Shown here: positions 5,307 to 60,346 of the stretch, in pieces | How positions within the stretch are numbered: position 1 is the first letter of the stretch | Layout of the letters: the number at the start of each line of letters is the position of its first letter | Assembly (NCBI GenBank): GCA_964199315.1 | Contig: OZ116710.1 | Span: forward strand, 16,554,001-16,618,000 | Origin: Orbicella franksi | Lineage: Eukaryota | DNA: 64,000 nucleotides | Reading direction: 5' to 3' | The notes under the pieces: generated by a model | Databases searched by the model: none | Told to the model about the DNA's origin: nothing | The model's input: only the letters and a program-made list of their open reading frames with translations | Position numbers and translations under genes: made by a program

Positions 5307-5427
5307 AGGCTTTCTTTCTCCCCTCTCTAGGAAAAAACCCCGGAAGGTCTATAGGGGATTTAGTTATTTAATATATTTTTCTTTTTTCCTTTGCAGTTAA
5401 CTCTACCGAGCAACTCATTAAGAGGAA

Positions 5428-8916: not shown

Positions 8917-9425
8917 AAGCAATTAAGGTTAAGAGACTGATGTGAAGTTTATTTCGCCTGCACTCTATCATATCGCAGAAGATTTCGTCCTGCTTTGCTT
9001 ATCTTTGTTCTTTTTTTTCAAGGATTTATGATCATTCAAATAAACGATTTGCTGTTGTTTCTTGGAAATTGTAAAAAAAGAAGACAAGTCCCTTTGCGCC
9101 AGATACCAACTCCGTAACGAAAAGCTATTTTGCGTCACGTTTGCCCTGAAATCAGTGGCCGCGGCAGCAAATCTTTTATTTCCTCTGATTGTAGATTTAA
9201 CAGAGTCGACCTTTCCTTTACAGAAACACCTCAACAACAAGGAGGAATTAGTTAATCCTTAAAGCAAAGACGTAGTTGTAGTGTGGAGCTGTTCACGAAG
9301 GGAGAACAAAAAAAAAGTGAGTGCGCGCGTATTTGTAGCCTTCGAACACCTGTCCTCGCCCCGATCGCTTTGCTCTCCGAATTCTTCGCAGGCTAGCGAA
9401 TTTGGAGTCACGTGCGTTATGCAGC

Positions 9426-9463
<38 letters not shown>

Positions 9464-18160: not shown

Positions 18161-19016
18161 CGGCAAGGGTCGAAAATTCGATTTCACTCATATTTTCATG
18201 GTAGATAGGCTAGGGCATGACAAAAACTACTGGATAGTTTTTTTGGCAAAATATCCTTTTATTTCAAAGAAATATGCAAATTACCAACTTCCGTTAAAAT
18301 CGTCATTTGACGCACCATTTTATTAAACAAGTTTGAGAGCCTCGCATACAAAACCACATCATTCTTCCGTCTTTAAAACACTCAAATATTTTTGTGCAAT
18401 GTTTAAATGTGTACTGGGTTAGTTTTAGAGAATGTTGGGTTGTCTTTTTGGGTGCAAAATAATTAAATTTCGAAGACATGTATTTCATTCACTTAAAAGT
18501 ACTTCGTGTATATAATTAATTTTCACCATGTGCGAAACCTTCAAATGGATTAAGCTTCTGGTGGTTGAATCGCAGAAGGATGATCTACAGATTCCTGTAA
18601 AAATTTCTTTGGGCAAATGATTGTGAGCGACGCGAGAGCTTTTCAAAATACGTTAAAAATGAAAATATTTGACCAATTCCTCATCAAATTTCAATTTACG
18701 GGTTAGAAATTTAATTATTTTGCACCCAAAAAGACAACGCAACATTCCCTAAAACTAACCCAGTACACATTTAAACATTGCACAAAAATATTTGAGTGTT
18801 TTAAAGACGGAAGAGTGATGTGGTTTTGCATGCGAGGCTCTCAAACTTGTTTAATAAAATGGTGCGTCAAATGACGATTTTAACGGAAGTTGGTAATTTG
18901 CATATTTCTTTGAAATAAAAGGATATTTTGCCAAAAAAACTATTCAGTAGTTTTTGCCATGCCCTAGCCTATCTACCATAAGAATATGAGCGAAATCGAA
19001 TTTTCTACCCTTGCCG
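18161..19016. mobile_element. Fold-back element with ~310-bp terminal inverted repeats
   Basis: 18161-~18471 (cggcaagggtcgaaaattcgatttc...) is a near-identical reverse complement of ~18706-19016 (...gaaatcgaattttctacccttgccg), with a ~235-bp non-coding spacer. Confidence 0.8.
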
Positions 19017-31514: not shown

Positions 31515-34500
31515 TTCTTGACACAGAACATCCATTCCTGCATAAAGGCTTATAATGGGACGGAGATAAGTTACCTAATTATACAACGCGGGGTTTCTGT
31601 GATTACTGGGAATCTCTCTTTATTTTTTTCACGTCTGCTGATATAAAATAAATGACAGGAAGAGTGACAAAGAGATCTCCGCTTGTCTTACTTTGTTTGT
31701 CTAAGATTACTAAATACGCCAAAGTTTTTTACTATTTTTCGCAAATCGAAAAGTTTTCAAAAAATGTAAAATCATTATAAAATTTCCAAAAATTGTTGAG
31801 TACACAAAGGAGTCATATGCAGGGAAGTCCACGTGACCACGAATTTTACAAAAGTTGCAAAGATGACGGTTATAGAAAATCCAAAAAACACCCCTAAGGA
31901 AAAGCACAAGCTCAATCACATCCCGCAATCAGGTACTAGCCGGAATAATGTCGAATGAGATAGAAAGAAGGCCTTTACGAGAACAGCTGCCAACGGGCAA
32001 TTGTGCCGGGAGGGGCAAAGGAGCTGAAGGAAATCAATGTTAAAAGGCCGAAACGGAAAATGTTTAAAAGCAATAATAGCAAGAAAAACTGAAGAGAAAA
32101 AGGAAAGATGCTAAGAGTGCAACAACTGCAGTACCAGTGACACTCCAGTTCACTAACTTGAGACAAAATTTAAAACAGTATGATCGCCAATCATTTCTAG
32201 GAATATGATTTTAACTTTGAAAGTTCTTTCTTATCCCATATCCGGTTTTTCGATTTGTTAAAATAAGCTTTTAACAAATGCGAAAACAAGGCATTAGACT
32301 AACCAAGGATGACTTCGGTGATTCTGCTGCTATTTTATACATGTATACAACATAGACATCGAGCCAATTTTATACAGTTTTTGAACTTATTAACTTGGTT
32401 TTCATTTCCCAATGCACTCATTTGAGCTAAGCATTGAAACCGGCTTGTTAAAACTATAATCGCCTAAGAGTTTGAAGAGAAAGTAAAGTATAGAAATTGC
32501 GATAAATTAAGTCCCTGAACTTGACGTCAAAGCTCGCATAGTTATTACTTTCAAGAAAAAGACTGGACCCCGTGCCCGGTGAGACTGTTAACAGCAGCCC
32601 TTTTCTCGGCGTAGGGTCTGACGAGTGTTTCACGCTATCGGCAAACGCATAAGGCCAAAACAGGACGGTTATCCATTTTAGGCTGAAACGTCTCGCCTCA
32701 TAATCCTTGCCAAAGTTCGAGAGAATGGCAGATTGCCAGCAGTCTATGTCTGGTAAGTTTCAAAGTCTTTATCGCCTGCGGCATATCAAATCGCAAAACA
32801 GTCGCCTTGCTGGCCCACTCTGCTTCATCTTATTACTTTTTCAATGCTGTAACGAATTATGGCTATGCAGATAAAGCTTGTGGTTATAGATTACTTGATT
32901 AAATAGACGAAAGGGCCGTGTGCGTCACATAGAAAGAGCTAAATTCCAAAAAAAAAATGTGACGGTTTTACAAAATTGGTTTTGTATGAGAACCATATGC
33001 AAAGAAACTCCAACTGACCAGGAACTTTACAAAATTTTCGAAAATTACAAACATGACCAAAAATGTAAAGAAAAAAAAAAAAAATGCACTGGCTTTAAAG
33101 CTTAAGTGAAAACACGAACCCAACACTTAATTTGTGTTCAGATAAATGATGGAATGAGTCAAATGGAATGGAAAGAAGGCTTTCATTCCTAAGAATTGCT
33201 ATAATTACAATACTTATGATACTGCGCAGATTACCAAGCGACAAAAGAATTCCACAAGGCCAATACAACAATTGGAAAGGCCAAAATATCAAGAAAAAAA
33301 TAAACAGATAAAGAGAATCACCTGAAAGAAGATAGGCTAAAACAATGGAATCAACAATGCGCGATTCAATAAAGGACCTAAAACAATAAAGACCACGAGA
33401 GCAATAACAGTACCAGAGACATTCCAATCCAACCTAAAACGCTTTTTAACCCGCCAAAGCAGGCTTTACTTTTAATCCTGTTTTTATTAAATTATATCAA
33501 GTAAACCTTCATAATTCGCCCCATATCCGAAATTCGCAACTATCTAGATCTGTTTAGTAAGCCAATGACTCTAGAAACGTACTCAGGCTAAATATGGAAT
33601 GACAGCGTTCACTTCCAAATGGAAATATGAAAAATTAGCCGTCGTCGTTCGCGTTCCTCAGACTACGTAAAACGTAGTCATTGTCTACTTGCACAAATCC
33701 CATAACACACCTCTTTTAACCCCAAATTTTGCGTAATCATTGTGGGCAATTTCTCCTGGGACATGAAGATGTCCCAAGAAAAATCTAAGACAATGCCTAT
33801 GCAAATTCTTTGGGGGTAAAAGAGGTGTATTATGAAATTTGTGCAAGTAGAGAATTCCACGTTCTTGATTTGCAAAAGACGGCAAAGAAATGTTCAAAGA
33901 TCTATAACACGCGTTCACAGCTATTATTTTGCTAATAAAACCTTTTGTTAGCTGACGTCCTCATTGCCGTCGTCTTCGTCGTCTTGGCTTGCTTGATTTC
34001 CCTTCTACAGGGCGAAGAACGCAAGGATTGTACTGGACTAATTTAGCACGGGCGACATTAAAACTAGAGTGGTTCTCTTGCTATTTCAGTTTAACCCCAC
34101 TCTCCTCCGAAAAGGCTTCAATTTTTTTTTCCGGGTGGGGTATCCACTGAGTAATGTAAGTGCAGGCGCAGGGTTACGGTCCATTCGACTTTGTGCCTGC
34201 ACTAACTTCGCACAGCCGATTTATATAACGAACGTTCGAACCTCTTTGTAAAAGAGAGGTATAACCCATGCATATGTTCGTTTTCAAATGCACACAAATG
34301 ACTTCACAAAGCTGGCTTTCTCGAAATATGTTTGCCTGGGATTTTGGAGAGGAGTCAAAGTAAAGAAATTGTGCAACTTCGTTTCCAGGGTTTTGCCCTT
34401 AGAGATTGGCAGGGGGAACGAGCTTGGAAATTGTGGTAAATAAGCTGAACAAGAGATGTCTGAAACGAGCAGAGTGATTAATTTCAAGAGAAGTACTGCT

Positions 34501-35309
34501 TTATTGTGCTGCCTCATGTAACTGAAGGCATATCCGTACCACGCGGTCGATGATTAAGAGATTAATGATTGACCGTTTTTATACTAGAGGAAGCATTATC
34601 TGTCCAGAAGGATAATGCGTCCTCGCCGTTTTTATACTAAAGACGCATTATCTGTCTGGACGAGCTTGGGCAAACATTTGTAGTTCGTCTGGTTGAGCGT
34701 CTCTAGTATAAAGGCGGGCACAAGATGTATTATGCTTCTAGAGGAACTCTCGAATCTCTCGAAGCGCATCGTTCAAGGCGTATTTCGAAGAATAGTTCGT
34801 TTAGACGCATAATAAGTCTTGTGCGCGTCTTTATGCTGGAGACGCACATCCAAACGAACTACGAATGTTTGCCCAAGCTCGTCAAGACAGATAATGTGTC
34901 TTTAGTATAAAAATGGCAATTAAGGTTAAGTGACTGGTGTGAAGTTTATTTTGCCTGCACTCTATTATATCGCAGAAGATTTCGTCCTGCTTTGCTTATC
35001 TTTGTTCTTTTTTTAAGGATTTATGATCATTCAAATAAACGATTTGCTGTTGTTCCTTGGAATTTGTAAAAAAAGAAGACAAGCGCCTGTGCGTCACAAA
35101 CCATCTCCGTGACGAAAAGCTATTTCGCGTCACGTTTACTCTGAAATCAGTGGCCGCGGCAGCAAATCTTTTATTTCCTCTGATTGTAGATTTAACAGAG
35201 TCGACTTTTCCTTCACAGAAACACCTCAACAACAAGAAGGAATTAGTTAATCCTTAAAGCAAAGACGCACTTGTAGTGTGGAGCTGTTCAGGAAGGGAGA
35301 ACAAAAAAA

Positions 35310-35614
35310 NNNNNNNNNNNNNNNNNNNNNNNNNNNNNNNNNNNNNNNNNNNNNNNNNNNNNNNNNNNNNNNNNNNNNNNNNNNNNNNNNNNNNNNNNNN
35401 NNNNNNNNNNNNNNNNNNNNNNNNNNNNNNNNNNNNNNNNNNNNNNNNNNNNNNNNNNNNNNNNNNNNNNNNNNNNNNNNNNNNNNNNNNNNNNNNNNNN
35501 NNNNNNNNNNNNNNNNNNNNNNNNNNNNNNNNNNNNNNNNNNNNNNNNNNNNNNNNNNNNNNNNNNNNNNNNNNNNNNNNNNNNNNNNNNNNNNNNNNNN
35601 NNNNNNNNNNNNNN
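35310..35614. other. Assembly gap (305 N)
   Basis: Run of N. Confidence 0.99.
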
Positions 35615-35920
35615 GTTGTTCCCTTACAAAGTTTGATCTTCATCTTGGCAATTAGCCATTTGATTCTGGCTTCAACCCTGTTGTCTATCTAAGGAGAAGG
35701 TAAACATGAGATTTTAACAGTTTCTGAAATAAATTTAACTTGCAACCCATTTTTAAGAGCATTACTTTGTGCTTCGCCATCTGTGTTAAGGGAACGCAAA
35801 AAAGAAGCCCGAATGTTCCTCTTAATGTAAACTTGAAAGGTTCACTTTGATTTCCGTCATTCCGAGAAATCCATCTTTTCCGCCATCAATCAAAAAAGAT
35901 TACTATTAGAAGTTATCTTG

Positions 35921-36510
35921 CAAGTTCCCAAGCATCAATCAACTCTTTTATTTTTTGAAGTCGGAAAAGACGGATTTCCCGGATTTCCCGGAGAACTGAC
36001 TTACAGTAATTAAGGGAAGTAATATAATACTACTCTTTATATCTGTAAGTATACTTACAGTAAAAAGGGAAGTATTACTGTAAGTCAGTTTCCCGGGATA
36101 TCCGGAAAATCCGTGGTTTCCACTGTCAAATGTAAGTGTCTTGCATTAATGATTTCATGAACAGTCAATTCATACTGTAAGTTGCCAAGCATTAATCTAC
36201 TCTGCTTTCTGAAGTTGGAAAACACGGATTTTCCGGATTTCCCGGAGAACTGACTTACAGTAATTAAGGGAAGTAATATAATACTTCCTTTTTTTACTGT
36301 AAGTATACTTACAGTAAAAAAGAGAAGTATTATATTACTTCCCCTTATTACTGTAAGTCAGTTCTCCGGGAAATCCGGAAAATCCGTCCTTTCCACCATC
36401 AAATCTAAATGTCTTGCATACTGATTTTATGAGCAGTCACTCCATACTGCAAGTTCCCAAGCATCAATCTATTCTCTTTTTGGAGATGGAAAAGACGGAT
36501 TTTCCGGTTT
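35921..36510. repeat. Tandem array of ~2.3 units (~260-270 bp), each full unit carrying a long palindrome
   Basis: Units start caagttcccaagcatcaatc at ~35921, ~36178 and ~36450. Unit 2 has a 178-bp near-perfect hairpin at 36217-36394 centred on ttactgtaagta|tacttacagtaa. Confidence 0.85.
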
Positions 36511-36943
36511 ACATAGAGAATTGACATATTTATCGAATTTAAGATGTGGAAATGCTTTAAAACATCCTTTAGATTTCTACACTAGTTGCATTCGAAAAAT
36601 CGGAAACCCTGTGGTGCAGAAACGCTTTGAATGAAGATAAAAAGGACAAAGTAATATATATCTGGAGTATTTTTGCCGTAAAGAAAGCCGTTGATTTAAT
36701 ACGTTAAAAATGCTATCTGGTTGCTTGATTACGCGGTACGGACTAATGTGTTCGCCAAAAGGTCAATTAGTTGCGACACTCACAATATCGTAATAACTGG
36801 AATCTATCCGTTGTTAATTCGGTGAAAAGTACGCCGTTATAAAACATTTCTTGTTTCTATTTTAAGAGGATAATATCAGTTTGAGTTGGTTTTGTTCCAA
36901 TGATAACTAGAGCACACCACGATTTTTTTTTTTCAAAGTCCTT

Positions 36944-38710
36944 TTATCGGTCGTATAATTTAGAAGGCGAACCGAATTTTCTTGCCGCCCGGCTCAGCAG
37001 AGAGTTGGCTGTCCTAACCTTTTGAAAACGAAATTCGGGGTCTCTTAGGATCGCTTGCCATTGACCGAAGCCGTGTTTTTTAAGTCCAGCTTTTAGGTAT
37101 TTGTCTTCTTCAGGAGAGAACATCACATTTTTTCTTCTCGCGCCAATTTCGTTCGGCCTGAAAGCATCTTCGCGTGTTAGTCTCGGCACGCCTGCTAGAC
37201 GCTCGGGTTGTTTTTTCGTGATCACTTCGACCTCGTCGGTAGAAGGAGTGTCACTATTGTCAGCATTTTGATCTTGCGAAGAGCTTGACAGGTCTGAAAG
37301 CCTCGAGCGCACTTCCATTTCTAATTCTGTTCCCCTGTCACCGTGCAATTCTTTCAAACATTTGTGTGCCTTACTAGCGACGTCACGCGATCGTTGCTTT
37401 TGATAGTGAACCCTTGCCACGACAGAGCTGTGTTTCTGATCCTCGGATATTGTGCTTTGCGCGTTGCTACTAAGTTGCCTGCAGCTTGCGGTCTCGACTA
37501 TTTGTCGATAGCGAGTCGGATGAACGTACTTGCCTGTTGCATCGAAGACAAGTTTACTCATTAGTTCTCCTAGCTTGTTGTGTTGTCCTCCATTTCTCGT
37601 CACTAAAACATAATCACAGTTCGGCTTGAGCAGAGGGCGTGTATGATTGATGTAGCCATCTAACACTTGCATGCTAGTCTCAGTCAGGTAAAGAGAATCG
37701 AAGCCAAACTTTCCTGCTGTTTTGAACATTTTCTGGTCGATAAATCCGCCGTTGGTTTTAGCGTTGTTCACCATCTCAACAGTTAAATATTGATATGTCA
37801 TCGGGCGCGATCCTTTGACCTTGATAAACAAATATACGGCGAGAAATTTGGTAGCAAACGATAAGTCTAGTGGGGATATTGTACCTGGATCATCCTTGCA
37901 TGATTTTAGCACGCTTTCGTAGCGCGGCAAATAACGCCCTACGACTTCCAAGAGCTCTTCTAGCGTAGCCCAGTGTCCCTTGGCTTCTAAGGCTTCGATA
38001 TCGAGTTCGCTCGTCCATTGTAATCGCATCATCTTGGAGACGGTCTTGCGGACTCGTTTTAAGTACAGCTCTGTGGAAGATAATCCTCTTAATACCGATT
38101 CCGAAGCTCCATTGACTTTTCTGAAATCCCCTAATTCTGCAATGGCGTCCAAATAGCCTATGCGCCCTGCGTGCCCGAGATTCCACTCGTCTTGCATCAT
38201 GTCAACAAATTTGAAAAGTAGATTGGGCGAACATAGACTAAAGTCAACGATTTCAAATGTAAGATCCTCCTCTTCTTCGCAACAGAATTTAAGAAACTTC
38301 AAACACTTGCTGACAATTTGGTGCGCTTGCCGATCACTTTTACAACCTCCGCCACTGCCGGTGAACCAGGACAAGAAATCTTGTGCGATTTCACTTGACA
38401 TGGCAAAAGAGACAACTCTTCTAGATTTAGGTGGAATCTTGTGATCACTGACCTCCATTTTGTTGCTTTTTTGTTGGCCTGATTCAATCTGAGTGATGTC
38501 TGGCTTTTCGTCGAAATAAAAGTACCAACGATGTTTGTTCTTTGCGTGTTTTCTGCATCCTCTTGCCGTTGTAAACCCATCATGATTGCAATCTTGCACT
38601 GGACAGTGAAAAAGGCCATCAGAATCGTCTTCTTCTAAGTGAAGTCGTTTGGGTTTAGGAGATGCGTTTCCTAACTTTGACCAGTCGATTTCCACTCCTC
38701 TTTTGTTCAT
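36944..38710 (-). CDS. Intronless 588-aa protein: C2H2 zinc finger + tyrosine recombinase/integrase + C-terminal Myb/SANT-like domain (Crypton-like mobile element protein)
   Basis: N-terminal CPVQDC-x12-HAKNKH. Tyrosine-recombinase motifs in order: GSRP (R), FKTAGK (K), VHPTRYRQ (PHxLR-like), QKHS (H), VHYQ (Y). C-terminal FSPEEDKYLKAGLKKHGFGQWQAIL resembles Myb helices 1-2. Confidence 0.8.
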   Translation of the reverse strand: MNKRGVEIDWSKLGNASPKPKRLHLEEDDSDGLFHCPVQDCNHDGFTTARGCRKHAKNKHRWYFYFDEKPDITQIESGQQKSNKMEVSDHKIPPKSRRVVSFAMSSEIAQDFLSWFTGSGGGCKSDRQAHQIVSKCLKFLKFCCEEEEDLTFEIVDFSLCSPNLLFKFVDMMQDEWNLGHAGRIGYLDAIAELGDFRKVNGASESVLRGLSSTELYLKRVRKTVSKMMRLQWTSELDIEALEAKGHWATLEELLEVVGRYLPRYESVLKSCKDDPGTISPLDLSFATKFLAVYLFIKVKGSRPMTYQYLTVEMVNNAKTNGGFIDQKMFKTAGKFGFDSLYLTETSMQVLDGYINHTRPLLKPNCDYVLVTRNGGQHNKLGELMSKLVFDATGKYVHPTRYRQIVETASCRQLSSNAQSTISEDQKHSSVVARVHYQKQRSRDVASKAHKCLKELHGDRGTELEMEVRSRLSDLSSSSQDQNADNSDTPSTDEVEVITKKQPERLAGVPRLTREDAFRPNEIGARRKNVMFSPEEDKYLKAGLKKHGFGQWQAILRDPEFRFQKVRTANSLLSRAARKFGSPSKLYDR

Positions 38711-38942
38711 CTTTTAATATCCGATATGTGAAGTTTCTCGCGAGACTACTGTATTTATAATAAATAGCTGACTTGTTATCCATCTGGCCCGCTTCTCACA
38801 CAATAAAACCAAACAAAGGAACAAAGGGGCAGGTCTCATCTTGTCCCAACCTGCCCTTACCTGATTAAGCATGCAGCAGGCAAGCCAGGCTAGAATTTGA
38901 ATTTGCCCTCGATCGCGCATGTTAGAATGGTAAAGTAACCTC

Positions 38943-39531
38943 GGAACTTGTGTTCGTGTTCACCAACGCTAAATAGGAACCCTCGTTCCCATTAAGTGAC
39001 TCAAATAAAACAACGGAATGCTAGTTCCTCTTTAACTTAAAGCGGAACTAATTCCAGTTTGGAAACAAAACTATTGTTTCCATGCTTTCAGCAGAAAAAA
39101 GGACCAAAATTGCTTTTGAAAGGGACCAATTAAAACATTTGGGAACGACAAGCAGCGATTAGGAACAGCACGTTCCTAATTGCAAATAAGATAAGACTAA
39201 AGTGGAACAATCGTTCCTTAATATTGAACTCCGGAACTTACTATGCTGGTCAATGGGAACGAATTGTGTAAAAGAGAACACTCGACAAAATCGGAACCAT
39301 TCGAAAAGGAACATTTGTTCCTGAAAAGATAAAAACGGAACAAAGAGTTCCCTTTACTCGCAATAAAAAAGGAACTTCGTGTTCTTGTTTAAGACAAAAG
39401 GAACCCGTTGTTCCGATTTCAGACATCGTTGTTCCTAGGACTGATTTCGGACTAAAAACAAGTTCCTATTGGTGTCTTCTAAGTTTGTTCCTTAAACAAT
39501 TAGAGGAACAAAGCAGTAAAACTCGCGGAAC
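38943..39531. repeat. Dense array of GGAAC/GTTCC pentamers upstream of the recombinase ORF
   Basis: 25 occurrences counted by eye in ~590 bp, often as GGAAC-N4/5-GTTCC inverted pairs. Confidence 0.8.
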
Positions 39532-39698
39532 GGTAGCTTTTCAAGAAAGCCATTATTTTTTGCGTCGCATCAATTACAATCATGATTTGAAAACTTGCTA
39601 AATTAAGGAATACGCCAACAAGGCGGGCAAAAAAATATCGACGAAAAAGATGGTGTTAAAAGCCAAAATCTCTGCTGTCATCAATTTTGGGGAATGTT

Positions 39699-39720
39699 AA
39701 TGATAATGATAATGATAATG

Positions 39721-39751
<31 letters not shown>

Positions 39752-39850
39752 AAGACTTTATTTAACGAGGGTAACATAATTTACTGGTTGCCCAGTAGTT
39801 TACAATATGGCCTTCCCTAATTTTACATAAAATCATTTACATATTATATA
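39699..39850 (-). mobile_element. (AATGAT)n microsatellite plus short adjacent segment, probably the 3' tail of a truncated LINE/SINE
   Basis: About 8 copies of AATGAT (39699-39746) followed by tttatttaacgagggtaac..., a layout like the microsatellite-tailed LINE at 58201. Homology to 9330 resumes at ~39852. Confidence 0.5.
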
Positions 39851-41330
39851 CTTGTAGCCTTCGAACACCTGTCCTCGCCTCGATCGCTTTGCTCTCCGAA
39901 TTCTTCGCAGGCTAGCGAATTTGGAGTCACGTGCGTTATGCCACGCAAAAAAACAAAAAAAAACAAAACAAAAAAACAAACAACAAAAAAAATACATACC
40001 ATTAAAAGCTGACTCGAGATGAGCAGTTTATTTCAAGTCATACCGAAAACCAGTTATTCTGCAAATCGGCGCGTTTCCCATCCACAGTTGCCGGTGAGTA
40101 AAGGTGAAAATTGTGATTAATTAACAGGAATTGTTTACATTCTATGATCAAGTTGTGTCAACCGAAAACGCAGTCATACAGAAATCAAATATATTCACCA
40201 CAAAATTACAAAAATTCACTTAAACCTGCAAATATTTGCAGTATTTGCACTTGAACGCGTGGAAAGATTAATGATTAGAGCGTTTAATAAGAAACACGCG
40301 GTTAATGCCTGAGAAAGGACTGAAAATTAGGCATCATAAGAGGCAATAGAAGTAGAAAAATAATTAATGTCATCTTCCGCTAACCGCTTTGCGGGGTTTA
40401 TTTCGCATGAAGACTCTGGCCTACTCATAAACAGGTTTTGGCATTTACAGTTGCTTCTAGTAGTGTCCCCTTTATAGAGCTGCTTCTTTTTGCATTTGAC
40501 GATACAGCAAGTCCGCTGGGAAAATTTTCTCAAACTGCTCAAGCTCTGAGGATTGCGAGAAAAGCACTTCCAGGCCTGTTGTTTAAGCGAGTTGCAATTA
40601 AATCTGCATAGAGCTACTGAAAGTATGTTCAAAAATATAACTATTTGCAAAGCCATCATACAAAAAGTCAGTATTTTGCCAGGACAAACAACAAGCGAAG
40701 AAACAAGCCGTTTTCCTGCTGAACAACATTGTTCGTGAGAATTCTATATAGAAAACGTTGAATAAAAATTGCTAAATGTATTCAAAACGTGTTTTGTCGG
40801 GAATACTATTATTGCTCGAAGGCAAAACATCTTCACAGTGATGAGATAAACTATCTCTGCTGTAAGCTAACACCGATTTTTTTCTCTACTTAATTGTTCG
40901 AATTAATCACAGCTAGTTTAATTAATCCAGTATTCAGCTTTACTTCTTTCCACCCAGTTTTGTTATTGTTTAGAGATTTGGCGAGATAAAATGTTATTAT
41001 ATATACAAAAGGTAAGCGATAGCAAAATAAATACGACGTTATATTGTTACGCTAGATCATAGAGTGCTGTTTGGAATGTCCGTCCGGCATAAATATTGAG
41101 TTTCTAACAGGGCCTGAAACCTATTCAGTTTGTCTAGGCAGTTTATTTGCACTTTAAACTCGTTAAACATCGATTTGTCGACAAGTCTTCGACAGCTAAG
41201 CCGTATCGTCTTTATGTTTGCGCGGTTGGTCTCTTTTTCCTAAGGCTATTTTACATACCGTTGTTATTAATTTTATTGTTTAATCAAAAAAATAGGATTA
41301 CAGAAGAGGCCAAACTCGGCTCCCACTTAA

Positions 41331-41972
41331 GGTAATTCCTCTAAAATAAAAGTGACAATAGATTTTTGCTCAAACTTTGTCCACTGAATATTTGTCATAT
41401 GGTAACTTCAATTTTGAAATAAAAAAGGGGGGTGCCCATGCTCATTGAGGAGCAGTGAGGCATTGAAAATGCCCCATTTTGGCATATTTAATGCTTATTA
41501 TAAGAACGCATTCCCAGTAATTGTAAAATCTTTGTGAACCCAGACTCATAAGAACACGCATTAAACTACAGTCAATACATTGTGTTGGACACAAATAAAC
41601 ATTTTAAGTCTGATTCAGGCAGAAAGCTAAATCCTTGATTAAAAATTTGAACCAAATTTCTTGACGTGGTTACCGACTGCAAAATAGAAAAGACCACAGT
41701 GTATCTGCTATTTTTCTTATTTATTCAATTTTCAGCAATAGAAATTAGATCATTCTTTTCTCACGCAAAGCTTATGATTAGTTGATTATATTGACTGGAA
41801 AAAAAATTGGGGTGCCCGTGCTCGTTGGTGAGCTAGAGCCATTTTTCAACTGACAGAACTCAATATCAAGGTAAATCCGTCGTGTTTTCAATATGCGCGT
41901 GCACGAGCGCGCGCTAATGACGCCATAAATTATGCGCAGTAAGGATGCGCAATGCAAATGTGAGGAATGACC
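41331..41972. mobile_element. 642-bp non-autonomous DNA transposon with TTAA target-site duplication (Kolobok/piggyBac-type target)
   Basis: TTAA|GGTAATTCCTC ... GAGGAATGACC|TTAA. The paralogous site near 10780 has a single TTAA and no insert. Confidence 0.8.
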
Positions 41973-45525: not shown

Positions 45526-47427
45526 ATGGCCTTCATTTCACCTAAAGTCTCTATAATGCCCTTGTTGTCTCTGTCGGCGATGTTTTTGCTGATGTACTGT
45601 GCCGGAGCAAATAACAAAACCAATCAACCGTCGTACAAAATGGTGAGTTATTGCGTTATCTGACAAATGTTAATTTCTGGTAAGAGTAAAACGAAATTTC
45701 GTTGCAAACACTATTGATTTAACTTTGGACATTACAGATGCGTCCACGTTGCCTTATTTATAGCTTTGATTGACTAAACCGGTTGAGCGGCACAAACAAT
45801 CTGGGCTTTCCTTCATTATAGACAGAAGTAGTTTTCTTCGTCGCTGTAAAAATTTTAAAATATTGCAACCAAAGCAGGGGGAAATACAGGGGCCTGATTC
45901 TAGTAGGAAGAAAAATTACGAAATTTAAACTTTAAAAGCAGTAAAATTTAAGCCTCCATGAGTGGAACAAAGTATTTTGTGACTAGTAAAAAATCTCCAC
46001 CAACAGATTTTGTATGATTTCTTGAATTGGCATATCCATAATATTACTGAATTTTAATTTTTTTTAGTCGCAGCAATAAACTAAGGTGAAATTAATTGTT
46101 AGTATAATTTTCAGAAGTGAATATTCACCAATGTTCACTTTGCCTTTGGCGAATAATTGTTAAATGTAGTAAAGTACTGCTCCTCGAAAATTGCCTCACT
46201 GTTACTAATTCAAATTGCAAACACTCTGTATACGAGTGACTGGTAAAAAACAGCGTTAAAATTCATGATTGTGAATCCCGAATAATTAAGGCCTTTTTTT
46301 CATTCCAATCCAGCAGCCTCTTGCTTTATGTTATGGTGGTATCCCTGGTATGCACGGCAAGCCTGGGTCTCCTGGGGCACCAGGTCGTGATGGTCGTGAT
46401 GGCCGTGACGGAGCCAAAGGTGACCAGGGCAGCCCGGGAAAGACTGGACCCCAGGGATCTCCAGGAACTCCTGGTATCAATGGAAAGAATGGCGCCAAAT
46501 GAACACCTGGAGTCCAGGGCCTCCCCGGCCAAAAGGGGCAGCGCGGAGAGAGTGGAACAAGTGAAACCCCTGGAACTCCTGGTGTGATGTCTTATAAGAA
46601 CTGGAAAGAGTGTACATGGAAAAACTTGAATGACCAAACAGATAACGGTCTGATCAAGGTGATTGAGTTTTGTAGGTGATGTTTTTGTAACAGATCATTG
46701 CGCACAGCTATCTCAAGCTTATTGTGTGAGCGTTGTTTACACTGGCAATCAGGACACTATCCCTTTCTTCCTTTGTGTTTCATTTTCGTGATGGTTTAGA
46801 TCGTGTTAAGCGCTGTCAAATAGTTTAAATTGATTTCTATTGCCCTACAACACATAAATATTTTTATTGATTGATTTTTAATGATTTTTATTCTGATTAT
46901 TTTAAGCTGAGGGCCCCAAGTTTATCAGTAACTTAAGTTACTGTCACGGGTCACCCTCATTAAATAAAGTCTTTCACTTCACTTCACTTCATTGATATTG
47001 TCGAGTGAATGTTTCCGTTTGATCAGTTATCGATCCCTTTCATTTCTCTTGTTTTTTTTTTTTAGTTTTGTAAAGGACTGTGTGTTCACCAAGAACTTCT
47101 CTCACACTTCCCTCCATGTTTACTGGACTGGTACTCTAAGAATCTACGGCTGTGACAGCTGCTGCAAAGTATTTCACTTTCAACGGTGCTGAATGTTCAG
47201 GCTCTCTTCCAATTGACGGTGTTGTGCGCATGTATAAAGGAAGTGGTAAAAATCCCCATCGCGTTCGCCATATTGAGGGACACTGCAACAACATCCACAA
47301 AGGCAAGGTGCGCGTGGGATTCTGGGTCGGTAATTGTGCCGGATACAGTGGAAGTTACGACGCCTACACAGGCTGGAATTCAGTGTCCCGGATCTTTACT
47401 GAAGAAGTTCCCAAACCTCAGGCTTAG
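45526..47427 (+). pseudogene. CTHRC1: CTHRC1-like copy 9 (exons 45526-45642, 46314-46658, 47076-47427), disabled
   Basis: Exon 1 is intact and nearly identical to copy 3. GGA>TGA at 46500-46502 in the collagen exon. A 5-nt deletion near 47168 shifts the frame of exon 3. Confidence 0.88.
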
Positions 47428-48796
47428 ATCTCGAGACAAAACATCCATTCCTGCAGAAAACGCTTATAATGGGACGGTGATAAATTGCTTAATTATATAA
47501 TGCGGGGTTCCTGTGATTACTGGGTGTGTTCTGTAAAGGTTTACGGTTCCTTTTTTTAATAAAATGCAGGAGGATTGATAAAGAAACATTTATTTGTTTG
47601 CATTTGTATTCTGTTCTCTTTCTTCATCCACATAGAGACAAGGAATGTTTTGTTCAGAATGTTAAAGCTAGAAATAGCAAGAAAATGGGAAAATGAGAAC
47701 ACGTGCACCCTGAGGAAAAGGTGGGGTCAAAATAAACCACTGTTTGATATATAGGTTTATTATACAGTTGGCGTTTTTAAACGGGTAAGATGAACCGAAT
47801 CCTGGGGTTTTATTGGCTACCCGAGCGTGAAAGATGGCGCTGTCTTGCCTGCTCTGGATTACCCGCTGTGTCCCGCCAAAAAAATAGTGCTCTTTTTCCA
47901 TCGAAAAAATCCTTTATTGAGTAAACTTGGTAAGTCAAGATGGCTTGATATTGGTCTCGTTCTTTTTCTGAAAAAAAAAAATGAAGTTGGCCAATATCCA
48001 GCCATCTAGACCTCACGCTAGGTCAATAGCCCGTATGTATATTAGTTCAGCTGTAATTCTGTGAGCGCAAAGTAATTGAAGCAAACCTAAGTAAGCCGAC
48101 TAAGCGTTCAAATACAGTGCAGCCTTAAACTCAGACTAAGTTTAGTTTGACAGGACCCCGTAGTATGGAAGGAATTTTACATAGCCTGCGAGTCACCTTC
48201 CAAGAGAATCTGGACAAAAGGAAAATATTACTAAGAAATTTACTGTTGATTTTCTCCGTCATGACCACTTGGAGATATTGGAAAACATATTGAAGAAACC
48301 ACAAGTTTGAGCTGAAAAACTTTGTGCACTTTGAACAACACCTGTCAACTTTAGGTCGATATCATCCTCATTTGTACCTAAGTTGCTCCTCTCTGTCCTC
48401 GTGTCTCTACTTTTAATCGATTGAAGAAATTAAAAAAATATAACAACAAACAATTTTAAGATGTTGACTATAGACTTGATTATCATCTGTTTTAAAAAAT
48501 ATGCCTTGTTCGGCCGGAGGAGACTCTCATTTAACTTATTCAAAGAAGATTATCCCACAGATATGTTCTAAGGAAGTACAATCAGCTGACGTTTTAGTCG
48601 ACAAACCTTCTTGTCAATTTACTCTTACATATTGACGAAAAATTCAGGATTCTTCAGAGCTGTTCAATTCTATCAAGTTAAAGAAAGGAAATAACAAACA
48701 GCGGATAAAAAAACATTTTCAGCCTGGTAGCGTTGATGTGAGAAAAAATTCTCGTCAATCACAAAGTGGTGTTAAATTTAAGGCGTGTCACATTTA

Positions 48797-49225
48797 AGGC
48801 CGAGACCCACTATGCGACAAATCGCTGCGACACGTCGCCGCGACAGCTTGCTGCAACAAATTGTGACATGTGAAAATTATTGTCGCAGCGACAGAATTTT
48901 GTCGCTGCGATCTGTTGGATGAATTCAAACTGTTTTGAATTCGTGCGACATATCGCAGCGACAAAATAAGCGCAAGCAGCTTTGTCACAGCGTGTCCACC
49001 CTTCTGCGAAATGTCGCTGCGACAAAATTTAAATCAACCAATGAAGGAGCGTCATATATTTATTTTTGGAGCTAGTTCACATTTTCCCTCTTCCAAATTC
49101 CCTTGCGTGCACCGATCAAGTGTCTCGTCGTAGCAGCAGTGCAGAAGAGGCGACTTGTCGCAGCGACAAAGCGAGTTGTCGCCGCGATGTGTCGAAACGA
49201 TTTGTCGCATAGTGTGTCTCGGCCT
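48797..49225. mobile_element. 429-bp PIF/Harbinger-type MITE
   Basis: 28-bp TIRs aggccgagacccactatgcgacaaatcg / cgatttgtcgcatagtgtgtctcggcct, flanked by TTA on both sides. The paralogous empty site has a single TTA at 3394-3396. Confidence 0.85.
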
Positions 49226-51240
49226 TTAGTCACGTCATATTCTGATTAAACATCAAGCTGGTGGGCAAAAAGTCAGCAAAAACTGCCTTTCTCTGGTAGA
49301 CTGAAAATATAAAATACGTATCTCTGTCTGTAAACACAGCCCTGTTTTTAATTACAGAAAACAAAAGAAAGAGAATAATATACTAGATAATAAAAAGTGG
49401 AACTAAAAGGTCATAGATTTAGGTTTATAAAAACATGTTTTCATATTCATTGTTAAAAGCGAGGATAAGTTGTTGTAAATTGGTTGTTTAGCTCAGCGTT
49501 CAAGGTATATACGACAATCAGGTTAATATTTCTTAAAAGGTAAAGTTTTATCGATTCTTCACAAATTCGTTATACTTCATGCATTTCTGCCTTGCCATTT
49601 AATTACCTTTAGAAAAAAAGAAAAAAAACATTAATAAGTCGGTGTACTTGATTCCAAAGTAAAATTTAAAAAAAAAAAATGCAAGAAAACCAATAAAGCT
49701 CTTTAGTTCTCAAAATTAAAAGGGTGTAGAATCAGTTTCAAACTAACAGCCTGCTTTCCGACTCACCGTTAAAACCAATCAGACAGGTTTGATCTGGTTT
49801 ATAAACACAGGCGACTTGTTCTCGAAGTTGTTGAAAGGAATGTCGGTCAGTTTAATATAGTTTTCAAGTCAGCAAGTCAATAGTTAAGCTTTCTTAGTGG
49901 GCAAAGTTATTTTTCTTTTTAAACAATCCGATATATTGCCTAAACCTTCTGTGTTGCAATTTTTAGTTTCCTTTAAAAAATATTATCTTTTAAAGCAAAA
50001 CATAAATAGTAAAGGAACAAAGTTTATTGGTTTCTTTTATACCAATTAAGGAGCGTGTGGACTCAGGTTTATAAACAAAGCCTGTTTTCAGACACATCGT
50101 TAAAAGCAATTATGCAGGTTCAATTTAGGTTTATAAACACAGGCGCCATTTTCCTAAAGTTGTCCAAAAAAATCTCTTTTTTTAATTTTTTTTTTTCCTC
50201 AACCGGATATACCGCATATATTTCTTTTCTTTATTTTTTGTAAATATATGAGAAATTAATCATCAACAAAGGGATTATATAAAACTATCTTGTCTAAAAT
50301 TAGGAGTAGATTATCGAGACACTTCCTGCTGGCTATGTGATCTGCAATCATCTTTAAATTTATTCAAGCATAATTCCAGTCGTAAGTTTGATCTCAGTAA
50401 ACTATGCTGAGAAAACAAAACGCGACAAACACATTAAGAGATGGACAAGAGTAAACAAAGTTCTATCGTAAAATATTGATTGCTGTTCAACGAGAAGTTC
50501 ATATCCTTTTCAACAGTGATAGGTACGTATTGAAGAAGTTTCCTTCCAGTGTTATACTGATTTACAATCTGATCTTCTTTTTTTCCTTTTCTTGCTTTAT
50601 TTATTATCTACATAGGTGTTGAGTTACTTGCAAGGTAAGTTATTTAAAAGAAGCCTCAACAACCCCTTTTTGTACAAAAAATCTCTGGCTAAAGTGAAAC
50701 AGAAAGCTAGTAAAATACGTGACGGCGAAGGCTGATGCGGAGAGAACCTTAAATAAACTTTCTCTCCGAGTCGATTATACCAACAACTGAGGCTCATTGG
50801 GCTAACTATTAGCAGCAGCTAGCCAAATTTTTCATAGTAACTTCATATGTAAAGTTACGAAAAGGTCTACTCAGTATTTAGATTGACGTGTCTATCAATG
50901 GTTCGGTGTATATTAAGATTGTTTTCAATTCTACTAAAAAAAGAACGTGATTAATCGTGAATATAACACTTGATAACCTGCTGGTGCCTTTCAACCTCCA
51001 TGCCAGGGCTTTCCTCTTAGAAACTTTGAGTGGCGAAACAGGAGCCTCTGGCCACTCCTCATGTGTTGAATTGCCCTTCATAACATCTAAGCTAAAAGCC
51101 CTGGAAACGAGGTTAGGCTTTCTTTCTCCCCTCACTAGCAAAAAAAAAAAAACCCGGAAGGTCTATAGAGGATTTAGTTATTTAATGTTTTTACTTTTTT
51201 CCTTTGTAATTAGCTCCACCGAGCAAATCATTCAGAGGAA

Positions 51241-52543
51241 ATGGTTTTTAAGATTGGTGTCTCTGTGGCCTTAATGTTGTTTGTGATGTCCAACTTAGCA
51301 GTTTATTGTGCTGCGGAGGAAAACAAAGCAGCAGGAAGACCGTGGTACCATAAGGTGTGTTTATGTCACATGCGCAAATGACTTTATTAAAAACTTCAAT
51401 GATAGAGACTAACGAGCAGCTTCTGTGACAACTACAGTTGAAAAATTGGGAAAACATGTTTTTCCATTAATTTGTTAAAGAACTAAGCTCTATAAGTGCA
51501 ATTTTTATGTAATGCTCAACGGAGAGATGGTAACATTATAAAGAATTTCTCTACTCAGTGCGTCCCAACCAAATCATTACCGGAAAGCGATGGCCTACGA
51601 CTTTACAGTTTCAGAAAAGATTTAATTGATGAAAAGCTTATACGTCGAGTCATAGTTTTCCCCCTTTGGTATCAACATAGTTACAGAGTTTCTCATAAAT
51701 ATTCAGAATTCTCATTCTAGTGTTCAGCAGCGTCCTCTTTTCTGTTATGGTGGTATCCCTGGAATGCCTGGCAAGCCTAGATCCCCTGGTTTTTTCCTGG
51801 GGCAACAGGTCGTGATGGCCGGGATGGCCGTGACGGAGCCAAAGGTGACCAGGGCAGTTCGGGGAAGACTAGACCCCAGGGATCCCCTGGTATCAATGGC
51901 ATTAATGGCGCCAAAGGAGGACTTGGAGCCCAGGGCCATCCCGGCCAAACGGGGCAGCGCGGAGAGAGTGGAACAAGTGTAATGCCTGGGACTCCTGGTG
52001 TGATGAACTGAAAGAGTGTGCATGGAAAGACTTGAATGACGGCAAAAATCACGGCCTGATCAAGGTGAATGCTTCGTTTGCGAAACAAACAATAGTTTGA
52101 GAGACGAAATTAATTGGGAATCGCAAAAGAATTATGTTTCTGAGTTTTGTTTCAAGTTTCTCCTTTTTATCGTTACGTTTTTACAGGAGTGTTTGGTCAG
52201 CAAGAACTTCTCGGACACTTCCCTCCATGTTTACTGGACTGGCGTTCTTAGAATCACTGGCTGTGACAATTGCTGCAAACGCTGGTATTTCACTTTCAAC
52301 GTTGTTGAATGTGCAGCTCCCCTGCCAATTGATGGTCTTGTTTACGTATTGAAATCAACGAGTCAAAATATTTACCGCGTCAACAACATTGAAGGGCACT
52401 GTAACAACATCCACAAAGGCAAGATGCGCCTGGGATTCTGGGTCAACAATTGTGCCGGATACAGTGGAAGTTATGACGCCTACACGGGCTGGAATTCAGT
52501 GTCCCGGATCTTCATTGAGGAAGTTCCTAAACCTCAGGCTTAG
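51241..52543 (+). pseudogene. CTHRC1: CTHRC1-like copy 10 (exons 51241-51354, 51728-52064, 52187-52543): collagen exon broken, exons 1 and 3 intact
   Basis: Paralog of copy 2. Exon 2 has a frameshift near 51790 and deletions at gtgatg/aactga. The signal exon and head exon are open. Confidence 0.8.
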
Positions 52544-54922
52544 ATCTCGAGACAAAACATTCATTCCTGCATAAACGTTTATAATTGAGCAGTGATAAAT
52601 TGCTTAATTACATAACGAGCTGTTTCTTTGATACTCTGATGTGCTCTGTAATTTTTTTACGTTTACTGGTTTTAAGTAAAGTGCTTCAGAGAGAGCTGCA
52701 GTGTTTCGTAATGGAAACCGAGGAATAGCCAGAGAAAGAGAACACTAAGGAAAAACCTGAGTGAAAAAAACGCAAGTTGAATATTTATGTGTATATCTCT
52801 GGGGTCATTTCTGGCTCTCTGGGCAAAAACAATGCAAAAACAAATCTGATATATAATAACTCCTTACCAAGAGTGCGGAGGAATTAAGTGAAGATGTATC
52901 AGTGCAGTCTTTAACTCAGAGTGTAGTCTGATGGAGCACTCAGATTACCTCTACGACTTAGTCATGCATCTCCTTGGTATAGAATTCGAAGGAATCTCAT
53001 ATAAACTGCGAAGACCTCCAAGATGATCCGCACAGAAGGAAAACGGAACGAAGGTTATTGTTATTGCTTTTTTTTTTTTTTTCTGTTACGACTAGGAAAA
53101 ATTGAAAGTCACACTGAAGAGGCCAAAAGATTGAAAAACTGAACTGTGTGCACATTTAACACCTGTCCACTTTAGATTATATAGATTGCATGCCACTATA
53201 TAAATTTCTCTATCGGTGTGTGTGTGTGGCGGGGGGGGGGGGGGGTTTGGGGGATGGTGGTTTTTTTTTTTTTTTTTTTTTTTCAATCGAGCTGATCTTT
53301 CACTGATCTCGTATCGAGAAAATTGATGTTGAATTTATCGACCGAATTAACAAAGAATGAACGCAATGCAAGCACTAAACAAACGCAAAATACCAAGATA
53401 ATGTTTTTTTTTTTATGAAGTAGAGAAGAAAAAAAACTGACCGAAAGAAATTAAAACGAATGGTTGTCTTCAGTATGGATCACTTGCCGTCTTCAAAACG
53501 TTAAAAACAGGCTTAATTTTACCTAAAGAGCTGATTTGTACGTATTAAAGTTCATTGACCCTTACTGCGCGACTCGCAAATTTTCTGCAACTTCCGAAAG
53601 CACATGTGATAATAATCCCTAATTTTACTCGGCCTCATGATAACCTACACTTATCCTGGACACTGGCCTCTTAACTCCACTGGTCTCTCAACTCCACTCC
53701 ATTCCAGGCATGTTAATCATGAAGTGCCTTTGGTATCCAATGTTATTGTATGGTTGCTAATTGTTTGTGTTTGAACATAAAAAGCCCAGTGAAAGAGCGA
53801 TACATATGCTAAGCTAATGACGCTGGGGCCAAACGGCCTTAACAACGGTCATTTAGGGCGAGTTTGTGCTCTTTGCCCATTTTTTTTACCAAACTTTACA
53901 CACTGCCTTGGATTGTTGTCTTGATCATTTTAAGTGGAACAAAATGTCCAAATGTCATATCGTAATATTGTGACGTCATATTTGATGACGCCGCAAAAAC
54001 GTGTTATAAAAATTTTCCAACTTCAAACTACCAAATATATCATTTAAGAGAGCATGACTAAGGGACTATTATACTGAAAACCGTTCCTCGCTATGACAAA
54101 TATTTCTCGGGTTATAGCAATTTAAAGAAATTTCAGTGTCCTCCCAGGAACCATTCTGTTCCTCCAAGATCAACCCCCTTGATATTTTTTATTCAGTTTT
54201 CTTTGAGGAACTCTGACAATTTGGAAATATAGAGTACTTAGTGCTGCTAAAAATGGTATCATTTTCGATCTTTTAGTTTTCGCCTCTTAAACAGGTTAAC
54301 ACAGGTTCAACTAAATCGGACGATCGCGAAGTGTGATATGAAAATCCTGTAACTTAACTACAAGGTTTTCTGGATACCTTGGATCCGCTGTCTTCTTGAC
54401 ACAGCAGCAAACTATTATACTGAGTATTAAATAGTATTAAACAGTGCGCAGAACTGTTCCCACGGCCACGGCGTTGCTGAGAACAAAAGACCAGTGTTTA
54501 AGAATGTGCGACGAACTTGATGCGGCAGAGACGCATTTCCGGCTTTTGTTTCATTACGCCACGTTTACCGGCTACGGTTGATCAGTGTATTTTAGCCGGA
54601 GAAAACAAACATGATCCCGCTCTCAGGCTATGCTAATTCGATTACATGGAAGTTTGTCACTAGCTACGGAAATACTACCACGATGTTTCCTTTACCGAAA
54701 CCCGTCCTCCAGAGGAGTTTAATTTACGACAAAGGCAGATATTATTGTTCACCATCAATTTGTTGAGGCTAAGAAAACACTGAGAAAACCCTAAGAATAT
54801 ACTGTTATGAAAATGTTAGCCTTTGTGGTTTAAAATAAATTCAATTATCGTTTTGTTATGATCTACCGGAAAAAAATATCATGAGTGCGAATAAAAGAGG
54901 AGGAGTGAGGAGTGTTAAAAAC

Positions 54923-55320
54923 TTAGAGATTTCCCGTTTTGGAGATTCCCTGTTTTAGAGATTCCCCGTTTTAGAGATTACTCCTTTAGAGATTCCCCGT
55001 TTTAGAGATTCCCCTTTTAGAGATTCCCCCTTTTAGAGATTCCCTGTTTTAGAGATTCCCCCTTTTAGAGATTTCCCGTTCTAGAGATTTCCCGTTTTAG
55101 ATATTCCCCCTTTTAGAGATTCCCCCTTTTAGAGATTCCCCCTCTTAGAGATTCCCCCTTTTAGAGATTCCCCCTTTTAGAGATTCCCCGTTCTCCGTTC
55201 CCCGTTCCCCGTTCCCCGTTCCCCGTTCCCCGTTCCCCGTTCCTCGTTCGCTGTTTCCCTTCCCCGTTCCCCGTTCTCCGTTCCCTGTTCACCTATTCCC
55301 CGATTGCCCCTTCCCCATTT
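54923..55320. repeat. Compound minisatellite: ~16-bp ttagagattccccctt units, then 7-bp ccccgtt units
   Basis: Directly visible tandem repeats at ~54923-55190 and ~55186-55290. Confidence 0.9.
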
Positions 55321-60158: not shown

Positions 60159-60346
60159 AATACGGTGTATGATACGCCAGACCTCTTTCGGTTTCGTTGA
60201 TGATAATGCCGTATTGATGAACGATCGTTTCGCCTCTTTGATCGTTGTTTTCAGACGATTACGGACGTCGCGAAAAGCTTGCCAGGCATCGGGTGTTTTT
60301 AACGAGTGTGCCTTGTGTCTTAGTACATTTCTCTGATTTTGAAGAC

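Follow-up and report, generated by a model that had tools for sequence, protein, structure and literature searches.

The question raised by this locus is what kind of DNA entered one copy of a segmental duplication in the coral Orbicella franksi. We analysed a 64-kb stretch of contig OZ116710.1 (positions 16,554,001 to 16,618,000 of the forward strand, assembly GCA_964199315.1), called the window below. When the window was compared with itself, 7037-9314 matched 32977-35309 at 90.7% identity and a second block at 9330-10790 matched 39849-41338 at 92.6%. The DNA lying between the two blocks in the second copy, 35310-39848 (305 N and 4234 bases), has no counterpart at the paralogous site, 9314-9330, which confirms what an earlier reading of the letters alone (the sequence-only reading) had claimed. 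That reading also placed the insertion after the duplication. This dating holds, since the element within the insert is 99.5-99.7% identical to copies that lie in other flanks (~0.4% diverged) whereas the duplicated flanks are only ~91% identical (~8-9% diverged). The insert carries a gene for a tyrosine recombinase, as predicted from its structure, between two arrays of repeated motifs. We consider it probable that the insert arose by recent transposition and derives, with loss of the helicase gene, from a Crypton-like DNA element of two genes that is widespread in cnidarians.

The right junction of the insert is uninterrupted sequence. On the left, the flank tracks the paralogue to an A-run, where the stretch of N begins. 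The 16 bases of the empty site are not found on the right side of the insert and so lie under the N stretch or nowhere.

Relatives of the recombinase are numerous, with 836 among clusters formed at 90% identity and 1428 clusters at 50% identity (E <=0.001). The named hosts include Porites lobata, Oculina patagonica, Nematostella vectensis and the jellyfish Rhopilema esculentum, the last with at least four loci. Individual loci are denoted below by numbers with the prefix L. Seven short contigs from other samples (L002-L007 and L016) are 99.5-99.7% identical to the window over 36765-39703. In L003, L005 and L006 the shared sequence ends at exactly the same base upstream of the gene and then gives way to three different flanks. 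Homology of the window to these three loci, to L016 and to L001 and L008-L010 of a related species stops at 39703, and the flanks differ beyond this point. Four copies in the assembly of the related coral, with 88% protein identity to the window and 97-99% identity among themselves, start at the homologous base in four different flanks. A third sub-family (61% protein identity), with a unit of 7.2-7.9 kb, has at least five left flanks at one sharp 5' end. Because near-identical copies share a sharp 5' end amid different flanks in three sub-families, the element is mobile and has been active recently.

The other end is best read in three copies of the related species (L001, L008 and L009), which end at ACTTACAG, followed by a CT-type microsatellite and then by differing flanks; the unit in this species is ~5.8 kb long. 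Both ends are readable in these three copies, and no direct repeat of at least 4 bp was seen in them; a microsatellite adjoins one end. The sequence-only reading had suggested that further copies be compared for shared ends and a possible target-site duplication. Many copies with a shared, sharp 5' end were found, but no target-site duplication of at least 4 bp was seen in the copies compared. No inverted repeat links the two ends of the visible window insert, which has neither terminal inverted repeats nor long direct repeats. Distal arrays are highly variable between copies of two further sub-families, and the contigs end within these arrays. Two candidates for a crossover site were dropped, as neither is conserved in the related species: the ATTGAC hexamer, which recurs, and a 5-bp inverted repeat that would arise if the 3' motif and the 5' terminus were joined.

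Microsatellites were seen at the ends of the element in several lineages. Those on the recombinase side are of ATCAT type and vary in length, both in further copies at the 5' end and, in similar form, in L013 and L015; those on the other side are of CT, CTTT or ATT type. Examples, again of varying length, are the 3' ends of L001, L008 and L009, L013:4790-4920, both ends of L015 and 39693-39749 of the window. In addition, L009:400-6100, immediately upstream of the first copy, harbours a second, divergent one (~70% nucleotide identity) in which the two genes are arranged alike. Neither of these genes is intact, and GGAAC palindromes form a separate regular array in this second copy.

The window insert contains a single long open reading frame (ORF), the uninterrupted 588-codon frame that had been noticed in the letters, and all remaining ORFs of at least 80 amino acids (aa) overlap it. 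Among the insert ORFs examined there is no reverse transcriptase; the ORF scan and the comparison of the visible ends thus agree with the earlier observation that neither a reverse transcriptase nor a terminal inverted repeat is present. HMMER searches of Pfam and of PDB sequences returned nothing for this protein beyond a C-terminal Myb/SANT domain, so the recombinase fold was recognised through structure prediction. The structure model and the conservation counts that follow rest on 34 relatives. The AlphaFold model has a mean predicted local distance difference test (pLDDT) score of 82 and consists of four parts: the strand-strand-helix module and the helical domain listed in Table 1, an alpha/beta domain (aa ~280-476), and a disordered linker with a three-helix tail. 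Nearly all Foldseek matches in the PDB were tyrosine recombinases, with XerA as the best (E 7.5e-4, probability 1.0) and YopR/MrpR, a staphylococcal integrase, XerH, Cre, lambda Int and Tn1549 Int among the others. Against viral models, the matches were phage integrases, recombinases of algal giant viruses and baculovirus VLF-1 (best E 8.8e-5, probability 1.0). The sequence-only reading had named the lack of such a fold as an outcome that would speak against it, and the fold search gave the opposite result.

The ordered motif set proposed for the recombinase, R302-K330-H397xxR400-H427-Y436, is conserved in the relatives: R302 and K330 occur in 34/34, H397 in 23/34, R400 in 33/34, H427 in 32/34 and Y436 in 33/34, and R402 is present in 34/34. 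The spacing of nine residues from H to Y is that of Cre, and the catalytic spacing and secondary-structure context are also Cre-like. At the N-terminus, C36, C41, H55 and H60 are invariant, and the module around them is modelled as strand-strand-helix with a pLDDT of ~90. Its pattern is C-x4-C-x13-H-x4-H, as against the C2H2 standard C-x(2-4)-C-x(12)-H-x(3-5)-H. The C2H2 finger of the sequence-only reading stands as an invariant CCHH module of suitable predicted shape, but not as a significant Pfam C2H2 match, the best being E 0.12, in two members only. The Myb-like tail that had been proposed is well supported. Pfam Myb_DNA-binding matches 31 of the 34 relatives (best E 3.9e-7), the window protein itself scoring 23.8 bits, just below the cut-off of 24.4, and the family profile matches TRF1 (E 4.3e-7). 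Together, these data indicate that the window protein is a predicted two-domain tyrosine recombinase, preceded by a CCHH finger-like module and followed by a TRF-like Myb domain. A basic stretch at aa 17-26 (PKPKR followed by LHLEE) is near-invariant in the family and may be a nuclear-localisation or interaction motif.

The gene was open in all seven copies compared. The ratio of nonsynonymous to synonymous substitution rates was 0.14 between two species and 0.17-0.56 among paralogous copies. These values indicate purifying selection on the recombinase gene.

The arrays on the two sides of the gene were examined for their motifs. In the proximal array, GGAAC/GTTCC pentamers have a density of 41 per kb, compared with 1.6 per kb elsewhere. 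Six of the seven GGAAC-N(4-5)-GTTCC palindromes in the window lie within 38976-39414, and 0.41 would be expected in the whole window. Such palindromes are found upstream of the recombinase gene in every anthozoan copy examined. In L011 and L012, the proteins of which are 58% identical to that of the window, they form regular 63-bp repeats, with 20 sites in L011.

The distal array is built differently, each unit consisting of three CGGA iterons 9 bp apart, ACTTACAGT and a short A/T-rich, hairpin-like core. One of its palindromes, at 36210-36401, has 96-nt arms and a spacer of zero. CGGA-N5-CGGA occurs eight times in 35962-36374 and is absent from the other 59 kb; all eight instances of ACTTACAGT or its complement in the window lie in the distal array. 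Enrichment of the array motifs is at least 26-fold. Although their recombinases are only 58% identical, L011 and L012 have a 30-bp iteron block at an identity of at least 90%, far above the neutral expectation at that protein distance. The 3' terminal motif of the related-species copies, ACTTACAG, is preceded by three CGGAGA iterons, and similar arrays of iterons and end motifs are present on the distal side in most sub-families. The two structured arrays seen in the letters are thus real and family-wide, on the grounds of motif enrichment and conservation in L011, L012 and most sub-families, and an ORF between two structured arrays is an architecture that the family conserves, not a chance feature of the locus. 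The jellyfish copy L014 is without GGAAC and ACTTACAG motifs, which indicates that the cis sites differ between cnidarian classes.

At L013 (9300-9960 and 10150-10400), a large palindrome consists of iteron-bearing arms on either side of an A/T-rich core of simple repeats. What looked like a long terminal inverted repeat at this locus was rejected; it is the inverted, partial 5' end of another copy beside the palindrome and is peculiar to L013.

In the related species, the unit shared by the copies runs beyond the recombinase gene into a convergent second gene, the homologues of which reach 680-785 aa. These homologues scored above the Pfam cut-offs for PPV_E1_C (30.3 bits, cut-off 26.5), Parvo_NS1 (21.4, cut-off 20) and DUF5906 (29.6, cut-off 27.6). 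Its fold matches were the helicase part of poxvirus D5/E5, the primase-helicase of SaPI5 and the PrimPol of African swine fever virus (E ~3e-6). A profile search of PDB sequences with the helicase gave only P-loop noise. The partner gene is predicted from these matches to encode a D5-like superfamily 3 (SF3) helicase with a Walker A/B core.

This gene accompanies the recombinase gene regularly. Over 2.9 kb the window and L016 are 99.5% identical, and directly after this shared stretch L016 has an open helicase gene of 764 aa; its recombinase gene is open too. The pair is also found in L011, L012 and L015 (other assemblies and a metagenome scaffold), with both genes open in L012 and L015. Some loci have a broken recombinase gene, which in L011 is in two pieces, and the helicase of L013 is a fragment. 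The jellyfish locus L014 (R. esculentum, GCA_013076305.1) has the gene pair as well, and its recombinase gene model sits within the span of a host gene model, Utp11. Among the metagenome loci, 31 were informative in that they extend at least 1.5 kb downstream of the recombinase gene; a helicase gene was present in 27 of these, always in convergent orientation. None of the three related-species copies examined has an intact helicase gene: one has an insertion and two an internal deletion, with at least one frameshift in addition in one of these two; the recombinase genes are open. In L030, the unit spans ~7.9 kb and its only long ORFs are these two genes; no reverse transcriptase, capsid or packaging gene was found in it. 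No relative of either gene was found among the 2.9 million contigs of IMG/VR. The element may be virus-derived, an option offered by the sequence-only reading: the helicase is of a viral or plasmid type, but the unit has no capsid gene and IMG/VR yielded no relative.

The window has no trace of the helicase gene. Because L016, at 99.5% identity, carries an open one, the window copy is interpreted as a derivative. The window and L006 both have the helicase-less form, each with a 5' flank of its own, which gives at least two such flanks. From the alignments, both copies are putative derivatives with one internal deletion, in which the helicase gene was lost and the recombinase gene and both arrays were kept. 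The sequence-only reading had called the element autonomous, and for the window copy this is not supported, as it is without the gene that accompanies the recombinase in L016 and in most of the informative metagenome loci. The coordinates of all features are given in Table 1.

Table 1. Parts of the insert, of its surroundings and of the helicase genes in related loci (window positions unless a locus is named).
Feature	Position	Strand	Basis or remark
Empty paralogous site, other copy of the duplication	9314-9330		Homology to filled copy up to 9314 and again from 9330
N stretch covering the left junction of the insert	35310-35614		Sole N run of the window
Left segment of insert, outside any element part	35615-35859		No match in the fetched loci or the rest of the window
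Distal (3'-side) array, ~254-272-bp near-perfect-palindrome units	35860-36530	-	Repeat and motif analysis
Spacer particular to the helicase-less variant	36531-36764	-	Window departs from L002-L005, L007 and L016; L006 follows it for the last 9 bases
3' untranslated stretch common to two-gene relatives	36765-36943	-	Alignment
Recombinase gene, 588 aa, open	36944-38710	-	ORF scan; no stop in 588 codons
TRF-like Myb/SANT domain, aa 527-580	36971-37132	-	Pfam and profile matches
Catalytic tyrosine-recombinase domain, aa ~280-476 (predicted)	37283-37873	-	R302, K330, H397, R400, H427, Y436; fold matches
Helical core-binding (SAM-like) domain, aa ~100-275 (predicted)	37886-38413	-	Model; fold matches cover both domains of Xer, Cre and lambda-Int types
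CCHH zinc-finger-like module, aa 34-60	38531-38611	-	Invariant C36, C41, H55, H60; model
Leader, proximal array to start codon	38711-38929	-	78% identical to related-species copies
Proximal (5'-side) array, GGAAC/GTTCC pentamers	38930-39540	-	25 half-sites, including 6 palindromes with 4-5 bp spacer
5' terminal segment, closing with the conserved terminal motif TCATTAACATTCCCCAAAAT (gene's strand)	39541-39703	-	Homology stop
(AATGAT)n microsatellite adjoining the 5' terminus	39693-39749		Length differs between copies
Right segment of insert, private to the window copy	39750-39848		Missing from the empty site
Open D5-like helicase genes (predicted), 737-774 aa	L016:3125-5419 (-); L012:7001-9250; L015:1837-4050; L030:7745-10069		Convergent to the recombinase gene

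To place the element among known systems, we compared it with the published classes of tyrosine-recombinase elements. Cryptons are eukaryotic DNA transposons that use a tyrosine recombinase (Goodwin 2003; Kojima and Jurka 2011, PMC3212892), and an active one, CryptonF-1_cRei, shows clean excision and gain of copies (PMC9977147). The element described here resembles them in having a tyrosine recombinase, no reverse transcriptase, no terminal inverted or long terminal repeats and non-autonomous derivatives; no classical target-site duplication was seen in the copies compared, and the same excision and re-insertion through site-specific recombination is proposed for it. Animal Cryptons have been described as being without a C-terminal domain and without terminal repeats (PMC3212892), whereas a Myb tail and an N-terminal finger-like module are present here. 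Compared box by box, the catalytic motifs are unlike those of CryA1_NV and of groups A, I, F and S in the alignment of PMC3212892. Another difference lies in the D5-like helicase of full-length copies and the long structured arrays, which are unreported in the Crypton papers compared. By the tests available, namely motif and hidden Markov model comparison, the element would work like a Crypton and stand outside the published Crypton groups.

The DIRS, Ngaro, PAT and VIPER elements also use a tyrosine recombinase as integrase and occur in cnidarians, but they carry a reverse transcriptase and RNase H, neither of which is present in the insert, the metagenome loci or the L030 unit. A DIRS-type retroelement is ruled out by the lack of a reverse transcriptase. 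A polinton-like virus or virophage is ruled out as well, there being no genes for a capsid or packaging ATPase and no relatives in IMG/VR. The pairing of a tyrosine recombinase and a D5-type SF3 helicase with iterons beside them is nevertheless shared by the full-length relatives with staphylococcal pathogenicity islands (SaPI), phage-inducible chromosomal islands (PICI), archaeal and bacterial integrative plasmids, virophages and polinton-like viruses. An integrase, a D5-like helicase and an iteron origin would be the closest logic, by analogy, for the full-length form. The differences are that the hosts here are animals, that the unit has ~5.5-8 kb and two genes with no capsid or packaging genes, and that the window copy lacks the helicase. 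This combination was not found for animal transposons in the literature searched.

The 2-micron plasmid of yeast has the FLP recombinase, inverted repeats and tandem ~62-bp STB repeats. As a lead only, the likeness is that of a small tyrosine-recombinase unit with large inverted repeats and a tandem array of ~63-bp period. It differs in that there is no sequence relation and any extrachromosomal form of the element is hypothetical. We found no paper that describes the family, a statement limited to the literature, as Repbase and Dfam (including the RepeatMasker classes Crypton-H, -C and -R) were outside the comparison and may list it. Within this scope, we found no description of the domain layout, the conserved arrays or the partner helicase for Crypton-like tyrosine-recombinase elements, and these appear to be new.

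A mechanism can be proposed in which the recombinase binds the repeated sites in both arrays, aided by the finger and the Myb domain, in the manner of the arm-type sites of lambda-type integrases. The sites would be the GGAAC palindromes near the 5' end and, near the other end, the CGGA iterons spaced by 9 bp and the ACTTACAGT palindromes. The enzyme would then synapse the ends and cut and rejoin them conservatively through Y436, resulting in excision and re-insertion, probably as a circle, as proposed for Cryptons. Such a mechanism would require no terminal inverted repeats and leave no target-site duplication. The convergent helicase gene of full-length relatives has the recombinase gene on one side and the distal array on the other. 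If the element were circular, both arrays would abut to form one control region from which the two genes read outward to converge at their 3' ends, and an outward-reading gene pair with a single control region is also a layout of small replicons. The iterons around an A/T-rich palindrome, clearest in L013, together with the D5-like helicase suggest replication of the excised form; the helicase would start from the iteron/palindrome region. This replication would explain the gain of copies, and the window copy, having the arrays and the recombinase, could rely on full-length copies for it.

Several points weigh against a Crypton-like transposon with a replicative partner. The structure model of the helicase has low confidence (pLDDT 62), and the Foldseek E-values and TM-scores of the recombinase are modest. 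No member of the 34 matches Pfam Phage_integrase or DUF3504, the domesticated CryptonA recombinase, even at E 10, and Phage_int_SAM_1 gave one weak match (E 0.005) in one member only. The assignment of the finger and the Myb domain to either array is conjectural. No contig has a circular or tandem end-to-end junction; L015, a metagenome scaffold of 7.3 kb, has no terminal overlap that would be a sign of a circle. At the locus itself, ~245 bases on the left of the insert and 99 bases on the right were not found in other copies, and the insert may be composite or the ends of the element variable. With the left junction under the N stretch, the 3' end of the window copy and any short direct repeats are unreadable.

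These points leave room for other explanations. It is possible, and we hold it only tentatively, that cnidarians carry small, self-replicating, integrating DNA replicons of two genes and that the window copy is a helicase-less satellite dependent on the full-length copies. In such replicons the D5-like helicase would be paired with an iteron/palindrome origin, and the finger-recombinase-Myb protein might serve in integration, resolution or tethering; we put this forward with considerable doubt. If true, animals would have their own equivalent of integrative plasmids, of SaPI-type islands or of the 2-micron circle of yeast.

That the element is primarily an episome that integrates, or a replicon of viral origin, and not a transposon, with the genomic copies as its integrated or decayed forms, seems unlikely. 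The molecule would be an extrachromosomal circle or a hairpin-ended linear form that the helicase replicates from the iteron/palindrome origin, the recombinase serving to integrate, excise or resolve multimers, and we regard this scheme as improbable; there is also only a small chance that the Myb domain tethers the molecule to chromatin. An integrase and a D5-like helicase with iterons around the A/T-rich palindrome of L013 do follow the logic of SaPI-type islands, integrative plasmids, virophages and polinton-like viruses, and the SaPI5 primase-helicase is among the fold matches. Divergent promoters and convergent genes would provide one control region in a circle, and the family is deeply conserved, in Anthozoa and Scyphozoa. 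Nevertheless, the lack of any circular or end-to-end junction, of capsid and packaging genes and of IMG/VR relatives argues against an episome, as do the copies in long chromosomal contigs and the two or more 5' flanks of the helicase-less form.

We think it very unlikely that the enzyme acts like a telomere resolvase and that the distal palindromes with zero spacer are replicated-telomere junctions of a hairpin-ended linear element. The perfect-type palindrome with its 96-nt arms would suit this idea, as would the tail-to-tail arrangement of the end motif ACTTACAG in the window and in L012, a Myb domain of the telomere-repeat-binding type and the end microsatellites of several lineages. Nevertheless, the best 50 fold matches in the PDB include Xer, Cre and integrase types and no protelomerase (TelK, TelA or ResT), and the copies are integrated with sharp ends in chromosomal contigs. 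That the insert is not mobile at all, being a domesticated host gene family or an assembly artefact, is hardly credible, since the strong purifying selection and the joining of its left side solely through the N stretch would fit but the copy and flank data contradict it, with many copies per genome in differing flanks at 97-99.7% identity, an empty site in the paralogue, an uninterrupted right junction and left-flank homology that runs up to the N stretch.

The preferred explanation, a two-gene Crypton-like element with a helicase-less derivative in the window, is of wider interest. No class of eukaryotic mobile DNA is less well understood than the DNA transposons with a tyrosine recombinase, the ends and cis sites of which are notoriously hard to define. 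Unlike Cryptons, this family offers sharp ends, two distinct and conserved arrays of putative binding sites and a recombinase with two extra, putatively DNA-binding domains, and near-identical copies with open genes are found in reef-building corals, sea anemones and jellyfish. The regular pairing with a replicative helicase of viral or plasmid type suggests a link in animals between transposons and replicating episomes, which bears on how copy number increases and on the origin of Crypton-like elements. In Chlamydomonas, recombinase-mediated rearrangements have been seen for an active Crypton (PMC9977147), and comparable rearrangements could contribute to the segmental duplications of the window.

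The window consists largely of repeated modules and segmental duplications at 80-92% identity, such as 700-6800 against 14800-16000 and 46000-52600 in the self-comparison, and the duplication that bears the element is one of several. A second indel of ~630 bp, at 41339-41971, is present only in the element-bearing duplicate and has no obvious terminal inverted repeat. Elsewhere, an inverted repeat of 314 bp (96.5% identity) has arms at 18161-18474 and 18703-19016 that are 228 bp apart, and a ladder of self-matches at 54923-55316 marks a tandem array with a period of ~16 bp. A non-LTR retrotransposon unrelated to the insert lies at 58437-61597 on the minus strand, with one ORF of 416 aa for a PHD finger and AP-endonuclease and a reverse-transcriptase ORF of 573 aa.

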